Below, piece after piece: positions 10,785 through 16,041 of a DNA stretch of 64,000 nucleotides; position 1 is the stretch's first letter; each line of letters begins with the position of its first letter. Position numbers and translations under genes: made by a program. Location: the sequence record MW460245.1. One strand, written 5' to 3'. The notes under the pieces are model-generated. The model searched no databases and was not told where the DNA came from. It saw only the letters and a list, made by a program, of their open reading frames with translations.

Positions 10785-11362
10785 GAACCATCAACCTGTT
10801 GCAAGCGCTGCGCGCGGTCCGGAAGGACAAGGATAACGAGGAGTACATGCTGGCCGAGGAGATTGGGCCACAGGTCAACATCAACGGCCTTTACGGGAAC
10901 TGGGAGATCGAAGGTTTCGATGAGCGCCTCAAAGGCTACTGGCTCATCAAGTGGCAGTGTACCGATACCTGGGTGGGTACATGCGCGATCTTTCTCGACA
11001 ATGAGTTGGTTGGCTACTTTTCGCAAGGTGCGCGTCGTTCTTCGAAGGAATGGGAATTCGTCAATCAGGAGGCAGTCGATAAGCTGCACGCCTTCCTGAA
11101 GCCGAAACCGAACAGCGAGAATATCGAGTTCATCGATCCTGACGAGGAGATTCCGACCTTCTTCTCGTATCCGTACGAAGGCGGTCAGCTCATTCGCGAA
11201 GGGCGGTACCAGAACCGGGAGTGTAAATACGTTGTGCCGCAGCCTGAACACATCCGCAAGAAGGCTGTTAGTACAGAAATCGAAGTCGAGTTTAGTGACA
11301 GCACTCGTGCGATCATTCCTGCCAAGGAATTCATGATGCCGATTCAACTGGAGGACATATGA
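10781..11362 (+). CDS. hypothetical phage protein
   Basis: ATGA-coupled; WQCTDTWVG motif. Confidence 0.75.
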   Translation: MRTINLLQALRAVRKDKDNEEYMLAEEIGPQVNINGLYGNWEIEGFDERLKGYWLIKWQCTDTWVGTCAIFLDNELVGYFSQGARRSSKEWEFVNQEAVDKLHAFLKPKPNSENIEFIDPDEEIPTFFSYPYEGGQLIREGRYQNRECKYVVPQPEHIRKKAVSTEIEVEFSDSTRAIIPAKEFMMPIQLEDI

Positions 11363-11857: not shown

Positions 11858-12065
11858 CAAACTCCTCTCGGCATTGGCCGCCGCTTTCAACATCCGTAAC
11901 CCTGGTGCTGACAAGCGGAACTGGCCAGAAGACTTCCCGCACGACAATGGTTGCTACCAGAACTCGTGTATCACCTGCGGAGGGCTCTTCTTGGGCCATA
12001 AGCGCAGGCTGTTGTGCAAGCAGTGCGACGGTAACACCCCTCAAATCCAAACTGGAGAACTGTAA
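11847..12065 (+). CDS. small Zn-ribbon protein
   Basis: CITC...CKQC pairs. Confidence 0.7.
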   Translation: MATDKLLSALAAAFNIRNPGADKRNWPEDFPHDNGCYQNSCITCGGLFLGHKRRLLCKQCDGNTPQIQTGEL

Positions 12066-12574
12066 TGAGCGATACCCAAAATATCCTGAAGGTTGTGGAC
12101 GACCTCGTCCTGCAGAAGACGCTTACCGTCGAAGCTGCTGAAGGCTTGGTCAAGCTGCGTGAGCGTGTGAAGAGTCTCGAAGCAGCAAACGAAAGCCTGA
12201 AGGCGAGCCTGACCGAATCGCAGCGTGAGAACGCGGACTACAAGGGTCGCCTGGATCGCACCATCGCCGACCTGCGTGTTCTGCAGGAGAAGGAAAGCAG
12301 CGTGCGTGAGCGTGAGGCGAAGGTCACGGAACTGGAGCGCAAGGCCGCTGTCGCTCAAGCAGAGGCGAGCGCTTACCTGACTTCGATGAAGATCGTTTTC
12401 GCCCCGAACATCGTCCGCGAATCGGTGCAGAAGTGGGGTTCGGTGGCTGGTCCGAACGGCATGTCGATCCCCACCAGCGACGGTGGTACGGTGAATCGCG
12501 CTGAAGGCTACGAGCAACCCGGTAGCGCTGCAGGATCTAGCGGCCCGCACGGTGGTGTGGACACCAAGCTGTAA
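12065..12574 (+). CDS. coiled-coil protein
   Basis: GGAG RBS; long heptad region. Confidence 0.75.
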   Translation: MSDTQNILKVVDDLVLQKTLTVEAAEGLVKLRERVKSLEAANESLKASLTESQRENADYKGRLDRTIADLRVLQEKESSVREREAKVTELERKAAVAQAEASAYLTSMKIVFAPNIVRESVQKWGSVAGPNGMSIPTSDGGTVNRAEGYEQPGSAAGSSGPHGGVDTKL

Positions 12575-12592: not shown

Positions 12593-12612
12593 GGGAGCTT
12601 CGGCTCCCTTTT
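12593..12612 (+). terminator. rho-independent terminator
   Basis: GGGAGC-TTCG-GCTCCC-TTTT. Confidence 0.8.
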
Positions 12613-12653
12613 ACCATATGCTCAGCGCATTCAAATACCTGTGGAGAAAAACG

Positions 12654-12986
12654 ATGGCTACGGTCAACGTCAATGGCGTTACGATCTCAGGCGGTAACAT
12701 CTCGATCGTCAACGGCAAGGTCTACGTGGACGGCAATCTGGTGGAAACTGGCGAAGCAAAGACGATCAACATCAATGTGGAAGGCTCGGTCGAATCGATC
12801 AAGGCAGATGCCTGCTCCTACGTGAAGGTCTCGGGCGATGCAGGAACCGTATCGACCGTGTCTGGTGACGTCCAGTGCGGCAACGTCCTTCATGGTTCGG
12901 TCTCAACGGTGAACGGTGACGTGAAGTGCGGTAACGTCATGGGGAACGTATCGACCGTTTCGGGAGATATCAGCCGTGGCAAGTGA
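12654..12986 (+). CDS. beta-strand repeat (DUF4097-like beta-helix) protein
   Basis: GGAG RBS; repeated VSTVSGDV(Q/K)CGNV units. Confidence 0.7.
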   Translation: MATVNVNGVTISGGNISIVNGKVYVDGNLVETGEAKTININVEGSVESIKADACSYVKVSGDAGTVSTVSGDVQCGNVLHGSVSTVNGDVKCGNVMGNVSTVSGDISRGK

Positions 12987-13230
12987 CGAAGGCTTGGACT
13001 GGATTCTGACTCAAGACGAAGCGCGTTCAGTATCGAAAATGCTGGCGGCACGGGAAGAATTACCGCAAGGTAACGTAGTCGTGTCCTGGCGCCGCAACGT
13101 CGTTCATCAGGTTGAAGTTGAGAGCCACGGCAACTTCGTCTACATCAACCTCAAGGGCGGTGGTAAGGCTGAGGTCCACTCATCGCTGGAAGCGTTCTGT
13201 AAGGCATATCAGATTGAAATACCGCAGTAA
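12976..13230 (+). CDS. hypothetical phage protein
   Basis: Overlapping GTG start. Confidence 0.65.
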   Translation: MASDEGLDWILTQDEARSVSKMLAAREELPQGNVVVSWRRNVVHQVEVESHGNFVYINLKGGGKAEVHSSLEAFCKAYQIEIPQ

Positions 13231-13233
13231 ATA
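13227..13233 (+). promoter_or_regulatory. putative late promoter (TAAATA core)
   Basis: CAGTAAATAAG at a gene junction; motif recurs at 15027, 16528, 31234, 35107, 51512, 60560. Confidence 0.5.
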
Positions 13234-13332
13234 AGTAATAGAAACAGTTTCAGACCGCGCTTCAATTTGATGCGGATCGACTCCACGTGAGTTCGTTCTA
13301 CCATCGAAATCCTTTTGAAAAAGGAAGCGACA

Positions 13333-13565
13333 ATGAAACTGAGACACTTGAGGTCCTCCACCGCCGGCAAGATACCAGATATCACGGCGATGCCAGAGGG
13401 CCGCATTGCAATCAACACCACGGACGGGCGCCATCTACTCTACGGTAGATGGCGCCGTCGCCGCTTTGGCGGACTCTAACCTGGTCGAGCTCTACGACAG
13501 TGGTGGCTTGGTCCAGACAGTCAACACAAAAAACCCCACGCAAGGCAAAATCACGATCAACGTGA
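13333..13565 (+). pseudogene. frameshifted, truncated tail-fibre-like gene
   Basis: AAGGAAG RBS; MKLRHLRSSTAGKIPDITAMPEGRIAINTTDG, then a +1 G (GGG run near 13426) and AIYSTVDGAV...; matches the RS.T.GK.P...GE.AIN..DG.IY tail-fibre N-terminus. Confidence 0.6.
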
Positions 13566-13811
13566 TGGACGCCGTTCCTCGGCTTCACCGCAGCCACGTA
13601 TTACCTGAAGGACAACAACGTCAGCAGCAATCGCTCGCAGTCGTACATCCTGAACGCATCATACTCGCTGTCGAAGCGGACGCAGCTTTATGCTGACCTT
13701 GGCTATGTCAGCAACCGCGGCACGATGAACCAAGGCCTCGCCTACGGTCAACCGGTAGCAGCAGGTCGCTCGACGACGGCTGCTATGATGGGCATGCGTC
13801 ACACCTTCTAA
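13566..13811 (+). pseudogene. C-terminal fragment of a Gram-negative (Burkholderiales-type) porin (not in ORF track)
   Basis: WTPFLGFTAATYY...ASYSLSKRTQLYADLGYVSN...MMGMRHTF*; no start codon; YSLSKRTxxY and G.RH.F end are porin hallmarks. Confidence 0.8.
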
Positions 13812-13824
13812 CAAGGAGCAATCA

Positions 13825-15030
13825 ATGAAACGGATTTTCGGGCTCATAGCCCTTGTTCTCTCTGCTGGTCTCGCCAGCGCGCAGCAGCCGAAGCTGGAAG
13901 GCTTCGATTTGAAACAGGCATCGATCCCGCCGTTCGAGGTCCCTGCGTTCTACAACACGGTCCCCGTTGCAGGGATGACCGTCGGTACCCTTCTCGCGAA
14001 GGAAGAACTCAGCGTCCCGAACGCGAAGGCATGGCGCATCATGTACGTCTCGGAACGCAGCGATGGCACGCACGTTCCGGCATCCGGCATCGTGGTATCT
14101 CCGAAGGCTGCGTCGGTCGCCAGTCGTCCTGTTGTCGTATGGGCGCACGGTACGACCGGCACTGCGCGAGGGTGTGCACCGTCGCTGGCTCCGAATCCGG
14201 CACGTCAGCTGGTACAGCGCGGTTCAGAGGAGAACCTGCCCATCGATATCGGTATTCCGTTCCTGAACGATTGGATCGCGAATGGCTACACGGTGGTGGC
14301 TCCTGACTACGCTGGCCTGGGATCGAACGCTATGCATCATTACCTCCTCGGTGAGGATGCTGCGCGTGATATCCACAACATGGTGAGGGCTGCGCGTTCG
14401 TTGCATCAAGCGAACGCTGGCACAGACGTAGCGCTGTTCGGTTGGTCGCAAGGCGGACAAGCTGTTCTCTTTGCAGGTGAGAATGGCAAAGCCTACGCGC
14501 CTGACAACAAGATCAGGAGCATCGTTGCACTGGCACCTGCAGCTACCATCATGTCGCCGGCAATCAACGCGATCTTCAAGTCCAAGACACCATATGCTCT
14601 GATGCTGTCTGCCGGCTACATCGATGCCTACAAGGTCGACCGCGGTATCTTCACCGAAGACGGCCAGAAGCTGTTGGCTTCCACGCAGAAGAATTGCGTG
14701 GTATCGATGTTCGGTGACATCGCCAAGTCAGGCCCGGCTATCACGTCGAACGTATCGGACAATCCGGGTTGGGCTGCTGCGCTCGCTCTGAACAATGCAG
14801 GTTCGAAGGCATCGTCACCTGTTCTGGTGTACCAAGGGACCACCGACATGATCGTTCCGCCGGCGTCCACCAAGGCGTACACGCAACGCGCTACCGCAGC
14901 AGGAACGCAGGTGCAGGTCACCGTGACCTCTTCGTCAAGAAGGCTGAGATCATTGCTCGGATCAAGGCTGGCTTCTCCAACTGAGCAGTACGGCCCCGCA
15001 CTAATCCTGCGGGGTTTTTCACGGCTGTAA
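13825..15030 (+). CDS. secreted lipase/esterase (LIP family alpha/beta hydrolase), probably frameshifted near the C-terminus
   Basis: Signal peptide; AHGTTG, VVAPDYAGLG, GWSQG nucleophile, QGTTD acid residue; His-containing natural end GHRDLF...FSN* lies in another frame (14916-14984). Confidence 0.85.
   Translation: MKRIFGLIALVLSAGLASAQQPKLEGFDLKQASIPPFEVPAFYNTVPVAGMTVGTLLAKEELSVPNAKAWRIMYVSERSDGTHVPASGIVVSPKAASVASRPVVVWAHGTTGTARGCAPSLAPNPARQLVQRGSEENLPIDIGIPFLNDWIANGYTVVAPDYAGLGSNAMHHYLLGEDAARDIHNMVRAARSLHQANAGTDVALFGWSQGGQAVLFAGENGKAYAPDNKIRSIVALAPAATIMSPAINAIFKSKTPYALMLSAGYIDAYKVDRGIFTEDGQKLLASTQKNCVVSMFGDIAKSGPAITSNVSDNPGWAAALALNNAGSKASSPVLVYQGTTDMIVPPASTKAYTQRATAAGTQVQVTVTSSSRRLRSLLGSRLASPTEQYGPALILRGFSRL
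14994..15019 (+). terminator. rho-independent terminator
   Basis: CCCCGCA-CTAATCC-TGCGGGG-TTTTT, 10 bp after the alternative-frame stop at 14984. Confidence 0.8.
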
Positions 15031-15033
15031 ATA
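15027..15033 (+). promoter_or_regulatory. putative late promoter
   Basis: TGTAAATAC directly after a terminator and upstream of an AGGAG RBS. Confidence 0.45.
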
Positions 15034-15061
15034 CAACGTGACCATCTGATAGGAGCAACAA

Positions 15062-15469
15062 ATGAACTTTGCATCAACGCATGGCCTAGTGACCTGGATC
15101 GGGGTCGCGATCTGGGCTGCCTGCTTTTTCTATGTATCACGCAAGCTGTTCACTCAGCTGGAGCATATCGAGAAGGGTTCTATAGGGATACCGTGTTCCA
15201 TAGCGGCAGTCATGTTCCTTGTAGCCGGCGGAATTCTGACCATCTTCGATCTCATCATTCTGTGGAAGGCTGCAATGTGGCTCGTTAGCGGTGCGACAGG
15301 CGGCCAGCTCATTGCTTTCGTCTTTGCATCGGCGTTGTGGGGCGCATCGGCGATCTTTACCTACGAGGTCTACCGCACTGGCGCACCGCAATGCTGGTTG
15401 CTGTTCCTGCTGCTGACGGCTGTTAGTGTCGGCTCCTATTTCCTCCTCACCACCAAGGTATTCGCATGA
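15062..15469 (+). CDS. four-TM membrane protein
   Basis: AGGAG RBS; four hydrophobic helices. Confidence 0.8.
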   Translation: MNFASTHGLVTWIGVAIWAACFFYVSRKLFTQLEHIEKGSIGIPCSIAAVMFLVAGGILTIFDLIILWKAAMWLVSGATGGQLIAFVFASALWGASAIFTYEVYRTGAPQCWLLFLLLTAVSVGSYFLLTTKVFA

Positions 15470-16041
15470 GCAACTACAAACTGGATCCGCGTACCATCCC
15501 TTCCGCTGAGCAGATTCAAGCAGCAGCTGAGCACTACGGCGTCGAGCTCACGGATGTACCTAACTTCGAAGGTGGACCTACGCCGGAGTGCATCAAGCAT
15601 TTCGAGGAGTTCCAGAAATACATCCTGTCTGACGATGAGCTGAAGGCTGCGATGGGTTCGCAAGAAGGTGAACCGAAAGCGGCCTTCGTCATCGACTCTG
15701 TTCCTGCAGGTTTGGAGAACGTCCCGCTGACGCACGACGACATGCTGCGAATCTCTGGCGTGCGCCAGTACACCACGAACCCGATCAGCCGACGTGCTAA
15801 CGAAGGCTCGGAGAAAGGTTTCAAGAAGGGTGAACTGGTGTCGATCATCGGTGCACCTCGCGGTCACAAGATCATGACCGAAGGCTTCGGTGAAAAGATT
15901 CATGATGCCTTCTACGCTGACAGGCCGGCAGCACGCAAATGGGTTGACCGCACGAAAGAGGATGCGGAGAAGCTGGACAAGGCAAAGGCGAAGCGCGCAC
16001 GGAGGGCTGCGAAGCTGATGAAACAAGGAGGTCTGTCGTGA
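15466..16041 (+). CDS. hypothetical phage protein
   Basis: ATGA-coupled; basic C-terminus. Confidence 0.75.
   Translation: MSNYKLDPRTIPSAEQIQAAAEHYGVELTDVPNFEGGPTPECIKHFEEFQKYILSDDELKAAMGSQEGEPKAAFVIDSVPAGLENVPLTHDDMLRISGVRQYTTNPISRRANEGSEKGFKKGELVSIIGAPRGHKIMTEGFGEKIHDAFYADRPAARKWVDRTKEDAEKLDKAKAKRARRAAKLMKQGGLS

Follow-up and report, generated by a model that had tools for sequence, protein, structure and literature searches.

A block of about 1.8 kb in the genome of Burkholderia phage BCSR5 (positions 13234-15026, + strand) holds three gene pieces in a row: the start of a tail-fibre-type gene, the end of a porin gene and a lipase gene. All positions are those of the window, a 64,000-nucleotide (nt) stretch of sequence record MW460245.1; subtracting 62000 from a record position gives the window position, and window 13231-15030 is record 75231-77030. 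With megablast, positions 12600-15500 matched MW460245.1 at 100% identity and no sister phage was returned, BCSR5 being the sole hit. BCSR5 is a lytic jumbo myovirus of 227,351 bp with a circular map and a guanine-plus-cytosine (G+C) content of 54.7%. It originated from sewage in Israel, and its growth host is B. cepacia BCC378. It is the sole member of an unnamed genus and is tied to the Sarumanvirus phages at the family level only.

Three gene pieces between two GTAAATA motifs

The left edge of the block is marked by a GTAAATA motif (13227-13233, +), which overlaps the upstream phage gene (12976-13230) at its stop codon. The right edge is marked by a second copy (15027-15033, +), 35 nt 5' of the next phage gene (15062-15469). 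The first motif is followed by an untranslated leader (13234-13332, +) with an AGGAAG ribosome-binding site just 5' of the ATG at 13333. This ATG opens a fibre-type open reading frame (ORF), and the gene remnant to which it belongs extends from 13333 to 13565 (+).

By tblastn, the first 32 residues of the fibre-type ORF matched N-termini in 443 phage records at 50-55% identity, with E-values down to 1e-3. Nearly all of the matching records are annotated as tail fibres, chiefly as distal subunits of the long fibres of T4-type phages. Across the records checked, those of IMG/VR included, the match lay within 3-8 codons of the annotated start; in BcepSaruman, Pseudomonas phage PspYZU05 and Ralstonia phage RsoM2USA it opened 3-6 codons past that start. 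Fibre-like ORFs in IMG/VR, from 279 to >1000 residues long, had N-termini 52-59% identical to the BCSR5 sequence, and a profile built from four fibre N-termini scored 44.6 bits on it. The match to the PHROG fibre families was weak (E 0.02). Past the fibre motif, the starting frame becomes an arginine-rich tail and then stops; another frame reads as a plausible continuation of the pattern of the fibre family, suggesting one probable frameshift. This second piece of the remnant gave no significant match with tblastn, BLASTP, PHROGs, Pfam or NCBIfam. The fibre shaft and the receptor-binding part are absent, since ~77 codons precede the porin junction, as against the 279 to >1000 residues of the comparators.

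Porin homology opens abruptly at 13566, immediately 3' of an in-frame stop codon, and the porin frame runs to the stop codon at 13809-13811, so that 13566-13811 (+) encodes 81 residues. These matched the Pfam family Porin_4 (PF13609) with 32.1 bits against a cut-off of 27, over profile positions 263-309 of 310. When porins of full length (374-403 residues) were compared, only their last 81 residues aligned (for example, 294-374 of 374), and the same comparison found no porin homology upstream of 13566 in any frame. A complete porin has a start codon, a signal peptide and a beta-barrel of about 350-400 residues. The piece in BCSR5 is approximately the last 22% of such a gene and has no start codon, no signal peptide and no full barrel. 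It ends in Phe before the stop codon, as did all ten of the aligned porins; this terminal Phe is part of the barrel-assembly signal. An alignment of ten bacterial porins has 28 invariant columns, of which the fragment retains 26, and the fragment therefore appears to have diverged little from the working gene to which it once belonged. An in-frame fusion protein of fibre and porin was ruled out, because the two frames differ and a stop codon lies at the junction.

A spacer of 13 nt (13812-13824, +) with an AAGGAG ribosome-binding site separates the porin stop codon from the ATG at 13825, where the lipase gene opens (13825-14984, +). The product matched the Pfam family LIP (PF03583) with 58.7 bits against a cut-off of 23 (E 7.7e-16). 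By eye, it has a putative N-terminal signal peptide, with a basic start, a hydrophobic core and an Ala-X-Ala site. The nucleophile motif GWSQG (GxSxG) is present, and the columns of the catalytic Ser and Asp were invariant in an alignment of ten sequences. The His column is kept in 9/9 bacterial homologues and is missing from the annotated phage ORF, the final tenth of which aligned with nothing. The conserved C-terminal segment with the catalytic His lies in another frame, ending at 14984. Correspondingly, six of eight homologues gave two high-scoring segment pairs in two frames (E 1e-163 and 5e-7 for the best pair), and the sizes of these pairs imply a net loss of ~22 nt that also removed conserved residues. 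Judged from the two frames, the lipase gene is broken once, by a single frame-shifting deletion of about 22 nt; a loss of this size is not a typical homopolymer sequencing error. The part of the lipase that remains in frame retains 111 of 122 columns invariant in nine homologues, and a similarly distant bacterial homologue retains 122 of 134.

Relatives of the lipase with solved structures are remote (Candida antarctica lipase A, 2veo and 3guu, and the Xanthomonas esterase 3h2g; E 1e-5 to 2e-4). The predicted structure of the annotated ORF, made with a ten-row alignment, had a mean pLDDT (predicted local distance difference test) of 51, too poor for a fold search. No phage relative exceeded 30% identity. 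In IMG/VR, contigs classed as viral carry LIP-family proteins with 28-30% identity to the phage lipase, which may be phage genes proper or belong to prophage flanks; phrog_28823, a family of unknown function, matched the lipase with an E-value of 3e-28.

Directly 3' of the lipase stop codon that homology supports lies an intrinsic-terminator-like hairpin (14992-15019, +), with a 9-bp G+C-rich stem followed by T5. It folds at -16.7 kcal/mol (z -2.1) and was missed by a consensus scan. A consensus scan of 12900-15400 likewise found no sigma-70-like promoter.

The window contains 11 copies of the GTAAATA motif, each of them on the + strand, where 1.25 would be expected (positions 11223, 13227, 15027, 16528, 31234, 35107, 35996, 46089, 48776, 51512 and 60560). 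Unannotated gaps, which account for only ~8% of the first 49 kb, have eight of the copies inside them or at their edges, and in two copies the TAA comes from a stop codon. Copies other than those at the block precede genes for a DNA ligase, an ATPase and an NTP (nucleoside triphosphate) pyrophosphohydrolase. GTAAATA is probably a regulatory signal of the phage.

An earlier note, made from the letters of this stretch, had described most of these features. Its tail-fibre-like N-terminus, the abrupt junction at about 13565, the last 81 codons of a Burkholderiales-type porin without a start codon, the 13-nt spacer with AAGGAG, the terminator and the second GTAAATA were all recovered. It had called the first GTAAATA a late-type promoter: the motif itself stands out as enriched and strand-specific, and the label "late" is unsupported because copies also precede genes of DNA metabolism. 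The +1 frameshift proposed for the fibre-type start agrees with the continuity of the motif, and the second piece had no significant match to back it. The signal-peptide lipase was recovered too, but had wrongly been taken as whole.

Relatives of the porin and lipase genes

With tblastn, all of the plasmid or chromid records that matched the porin fragment (175/175) were from Burkholderiales. Identities to the fragment were 59-60% in Caballeronia, 56% in Paraburkholderia and 53-54% in Burkholderia. The best match among 1.84 billion protein representatives was a metagenomic porin of 396 residues, at 69-70% identity. Its nearest named relatives are porins of Paraburkholderia, which are 58-60% identical to the fragment, and a word search around its C-terminus found nothing closer to the fragment.

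The closest homologues of the lipase were bacterial proteins of 398-410 residues at 57-64% identity (E-values to 1e-143), all from metagenomes or unnamed assemblies. Named relatives were more distant, at 54% identity in Camelimonas and 46-54% in Brucella/Ochrobactrum, and the LIP-family members on Burkholderia replicons in PLSDB were just ~29% identical. A scan with lipase peptides of one genome per species (185,579 species) gave one distant match, at 28% identity. In metagenomes, a scan with the lipase alignment found 17 loci; identity peaked at 59%, and a porin was present at none of them. Contamination of the assembly by host DNA was rejected on the identities of the Burkholderia porins and lipases and on the absence of a close lipase among the 185,579 species.

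The captured genes have a G+C content of 58-59%, compared with 55.5% for the phage in the window and 55-62% for three contigs that carry their closest relatives. G+C at third codon positions (GC3) was 0.67-0.75 in the block and 0.68 ± 0.05 (range 0.59-0.78) in 25 neighbouring phage genes; GC3 in the porin genes of Caballeronia and Burkholderia was higher than in the captured genes. The G+C content of the B. cepacia complex is ~67%, and the mid-G+C composition therefore argues against a donor from this complex. The natural hosts of BCSR5 may include a member of the Burkholderiales that is of mid-G+C content and has not been sampled. The earlier note had taken the block as a clue to the host. 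This holds only at the level of the Burkholderiaceae, a link known beforehand, and not for the laboratory host, given the 53-54% identity of the Burkholderia porins.

Origin of the block

The explanation that we consider the most probable, with somewhat better than even confidence, is that a bacterial piece was joined to the fibre-type gene by one illegitimate recombination event and that the block is now decaying passenger DNA. The incoming piece would have consisted of the last 81 porin codons, the short spacer, a complete LIP-family lipase gene and the terminator, and it would have been joined to the first ~77 codons of a fibre-type gene of the phage's own, replacing the remainder of that gene. 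The abrupt junction at 13566, which has no homology across it, is the signature of such non-homologous recombination. The direction of transfer would be from bacterium to phage, and the donor would be an unsequenced member of the Burkholderiales with moderate G+C content, not the B. cepacia strain on which the phage was grown.

That porin and lipase arrived together is suggested by the short spacer with its ribosome-binding site, by the terminator behind the lipase and by the way in which related porin genes are arranged. At two Caballeronia loci (L009 and L010; 3744-3790), a co-oriented gene behind a GGAGCAA-type ribosome-binding site follows a related porin after ~20 nt, and at L010 this gene encodes a BON-domain protein. 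This type of porin often heads a tight two-gene unit, and because a porin with a closely following gene is normal for the type, capture as one piece is the simplest reading.

Two lesions would have followed the capture: the probable frameshift in the fibre remnant and the deletion in the lipase gene, which parts the catalytic histidine from the serine and the aspartate. As judged by the invariant columns, most of which are kept, and by the single break in the lipase, the decay is apparently recent and limited. All three pieces would now be non-functional remnants, and no working protein would be expected from the block (13234-15026), which a 227-kb phage could carry at little cost.

Several observations weigh against this explanation. 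No second copy of the fibre motif was found in BCSR5, nor any homologue of the gp273-type fibre proteins of Saruman, and the surroundings of the block are an extended series of small orphan genes, non-structural and with DNA-metabolism genes among them; for these reasons the fibre-type start may itself have been imported. The frameshift in the fibre remnant, read from motif continuity and statistically unsupported, is no firmer than probable. No porin was found directly upstream of a related lipase on the contigs of the five closest lipases, at the 17 metagenome loci or at the one genome locus, and none of four loci with related porins had a lipase downstream. The closest lipases adjoin a divergent LysR gene or other genes (e.g., a SnoaL-like gene). 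Composition neither flags the block as foreign nor dates it. Finally, BCSR5 is represented by a single deposited sequence, and the small lesions could in principle be errors.

Because no locus joins both genes, a porin-lipase operon is something that we infer. Such an operon, recombined illegitimately into a late gene of the phage, had been the interpretation given in the earlier note. The recombination of bacterial DNA is borne out by the bacterial-type genes and the homology-free junction; the non-structural surroundings speak against a late gene, and the operon itself found no counterpart at any of the lipase or porin loci. The LysR gene beside the closest lipase has its named relatives in Ideonella, Allopusillimonas, Diaphorobacter and Alcaligenaceae, and then in Pseudomonas. 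As these are mainly Burkholderiales, the lineage of the lipase is probably Burkholderiales too.

An unlikely explanation, which we keep open because a fibre-type gene is out of place in a non-structural region, is that the whole block, its fibre-type start included, was imported already scrambled, either from another phage or from a chromosome that carried a decayed prophage, a porin remnant and a lipase gene. BCSR5 would then never have had a fibre-type gene at this site, and most of the decay would have happened in the donor. The single fibre motif, the missing gp273-type homologue and the orphan and DNA-metabolism neighbours are all consistent with this, as is the neat bounding of the block by two copies of GTAAATA. 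No such donor arrangement was found in the searches above, however, and the leader and ribosome-binding site of the fibre-type gene are similar to their counterparts at neighbouring phage genes (in repeats D4 and D8, which are short and may be due to chance). Nor does composition separate any part of the block from the phage.

It is improbable that the porin fragment and the lipase gene came in two separate recombination events and became adjacent in the phage. The loci in which the two genes are never paired, and the different neighbours of the closest lipases, would be accounted for in this way. Two insertions, however, would have had to land 13 nt apart, both be of Burkholderiales type, and leave a clean stop codon, spacer, ribosome-binding site and start codon, which is less parsimonious. 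Related porins head tight operons, and at 57-70% identity a conserved gene order is not expected anyway.

We consider it very improbable that part of the block is still in use. The product might be an accessory secreted LIP-family enzyme, made as it stands or through a change of ribosomal frame, with the lesions being tolerated or regulatory; a truncated lipid-binding protein; or a short product with the porin C-terminus that disturbs outer-membrane protein assembly or envelope-stress sensing. In favour of use, the lipase keeps its start codon, ribosome-binding site, putative signal peptide, GWSQG and most of its invariant columns, and LIP-family proteins apparently exist in phages and prophages, as the IMG/VR and PHROG matches suggest. 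Against it, the nearly invariant segment with the catalytic His is out of frame, the loss of ~22 nt removed conserved residues, and the annotated ORF ends in a nonsense tail that runs through the terminator. The porin piece has no start codon, and no relative conserves the arrangement. An artefact, with chimeric assembly or sequencing errors producing the junctions or the small lesions, has a similarly slight chance of being the cause: there is one deposited sequence, with 594 nt unannotated in GenBank, but an internal chimera would need two false junctions in a 227-kb circular assembly, the inserted genes are close to no sequenced species and so do not come from contamination by the laboratory host, and large truncations and a ~22-nt loss are atypical of base-calling errors.

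Known systems, annotation and neighbouring features

Taken as a capture of bacterial DNA by a phage, followed by decay, the block is of a kind already known; as an example it is ordinary, although it can be read with unusual clarity. Mycobacteriophage Giles, in work by Morris and co-workers from 2008, is reportedly the type case of host DNA acquired through illegitimate recombination. In both phages a piece of bacterial chromosome has abrupt, homology-free junctions and includes gene parts that cannot function. BCSR5 differs from Giles in that no donor can be named (the best protein identities are 64-70%), in being a lytic jumbo phage without relatives, and in that the piece abuts a truncated fibre-type gene.

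Morons of lambdoid and other phages, described by Juhala, Hendrix and colleagues in 2000, are said to be extra genes that stand between two phage genes with a promoter and a terminator of their own. The lipase gene of BCSR5 is similarly of non-phage type, lies between co-oriented phage genes and comes with a ribosome-binding site and a terminator. Unlike a moron, the lipase gene has no promoter of its own by the consensus scan, is not distinct in composition, has been broken, and is accompanied by a remnant of the gene once upstream of it. Lambdoid phages and prophages can have porin genes that are whole and expressed, for example lc in phage PA-2 and nmpC in DLP12. As in those cases, the gene in BCSR5 is of the host's general-porin type; unlike them, just the last 22% is held, without start codon or signal peptide. 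Within the LIP family (PF03583), the lipase of BCSR5 is typical in scoring well above the Pfam cut-off and in having the GxSxG motif and the conserved Asp column. It is atypical in that the catalytic-His segment is out of frame, and its similarity to the solved structures is remote.

Arbiol et al. in 2010 reportedly described promoter-stem-loop cassettes of T4-type phages, in which small genes are shuffled between repeated regulatory motifs. Like those plastic regions, the block in BCSR5 lies among small orphan genes and is bounded by a short, strand-specific and mostly intergenic motif. Set against the T4-type cassettes, GTAAATA is a candidate regulatory motif, and recombination between its copies would be conjecture.

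Under the standard model of phage mosaicism, almost any site can undergo non-homologous recombination, and selection purges the useless products, which are rarely seen. The block in BCSR5 would preserve one such product in which the joins can still be seen between parts of different origin (the beginning of one gene, the end of another and a complete third gene), with early secondary lesions. It would also show that a jumbo phage tolerates ~1.8 kb of dead DNA. Because the captured genes, their closest relatives and the phage are all of mid-G+C content, well below the B. cepacia complex, BCSR5 would once have replicated in a member of the Burkholderiales that is unrepresented in current genome collections. 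Thinking on how such systems work is left unchanged by the block.

In GenBank, all genes of the window are on the + strand and nearly all are hypothetical proteins. A gap of 594 nt without annotation (13231-13824) contains the porin fragment, which is thus unannotated, and it is followed by a hypothetical protein at 13825-15030, an ORF whose out-of-frame tail continues across the terminator. Both the gap and the lipase ORF need correction.

A perfect inverted repeat with a 12-bp stem and a 6-nt loop lies inside the fibre remnant (13333-13565) and has no T run after it. Folded as DNA it reached -18.4 kcal/mol (z -5.5), and 0/200 shuffled sequences folded as well. Neither the leader nor the block matched any Rfam family. 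The start regions of the fibre-type gene (13318-13342), the lipase gene (13810-13834) and the next phage gene (15051-15066) are alike, with the pattern AGGAGCAA..AATGAA and 72-88% identity over 16-25 nt. This likeness may reflect a shared initiation context or chance.

No relatives of the proteins flanking the block were found in IMG/VR. The sole link of the neighbourhood to another phage, found in INPHARED, is that of the 169-residue product of 12065-12574, which shares 37% identity with ORF281 of phiRSL1, a jumbo phage of Ralstonia; the ORF281 region consists of uninformative small genes. The gene at 12618-12986 encodes a repetitive product of 122 residues, rich in Gly, Val and Asn, which matched phrog_3163 (unknown function) with an E-value of 1e-30. 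A borderline Pfam match of this product, at 22.1 bits where the cut-off is 22.3, was to a haem-binding Shr-like domain.

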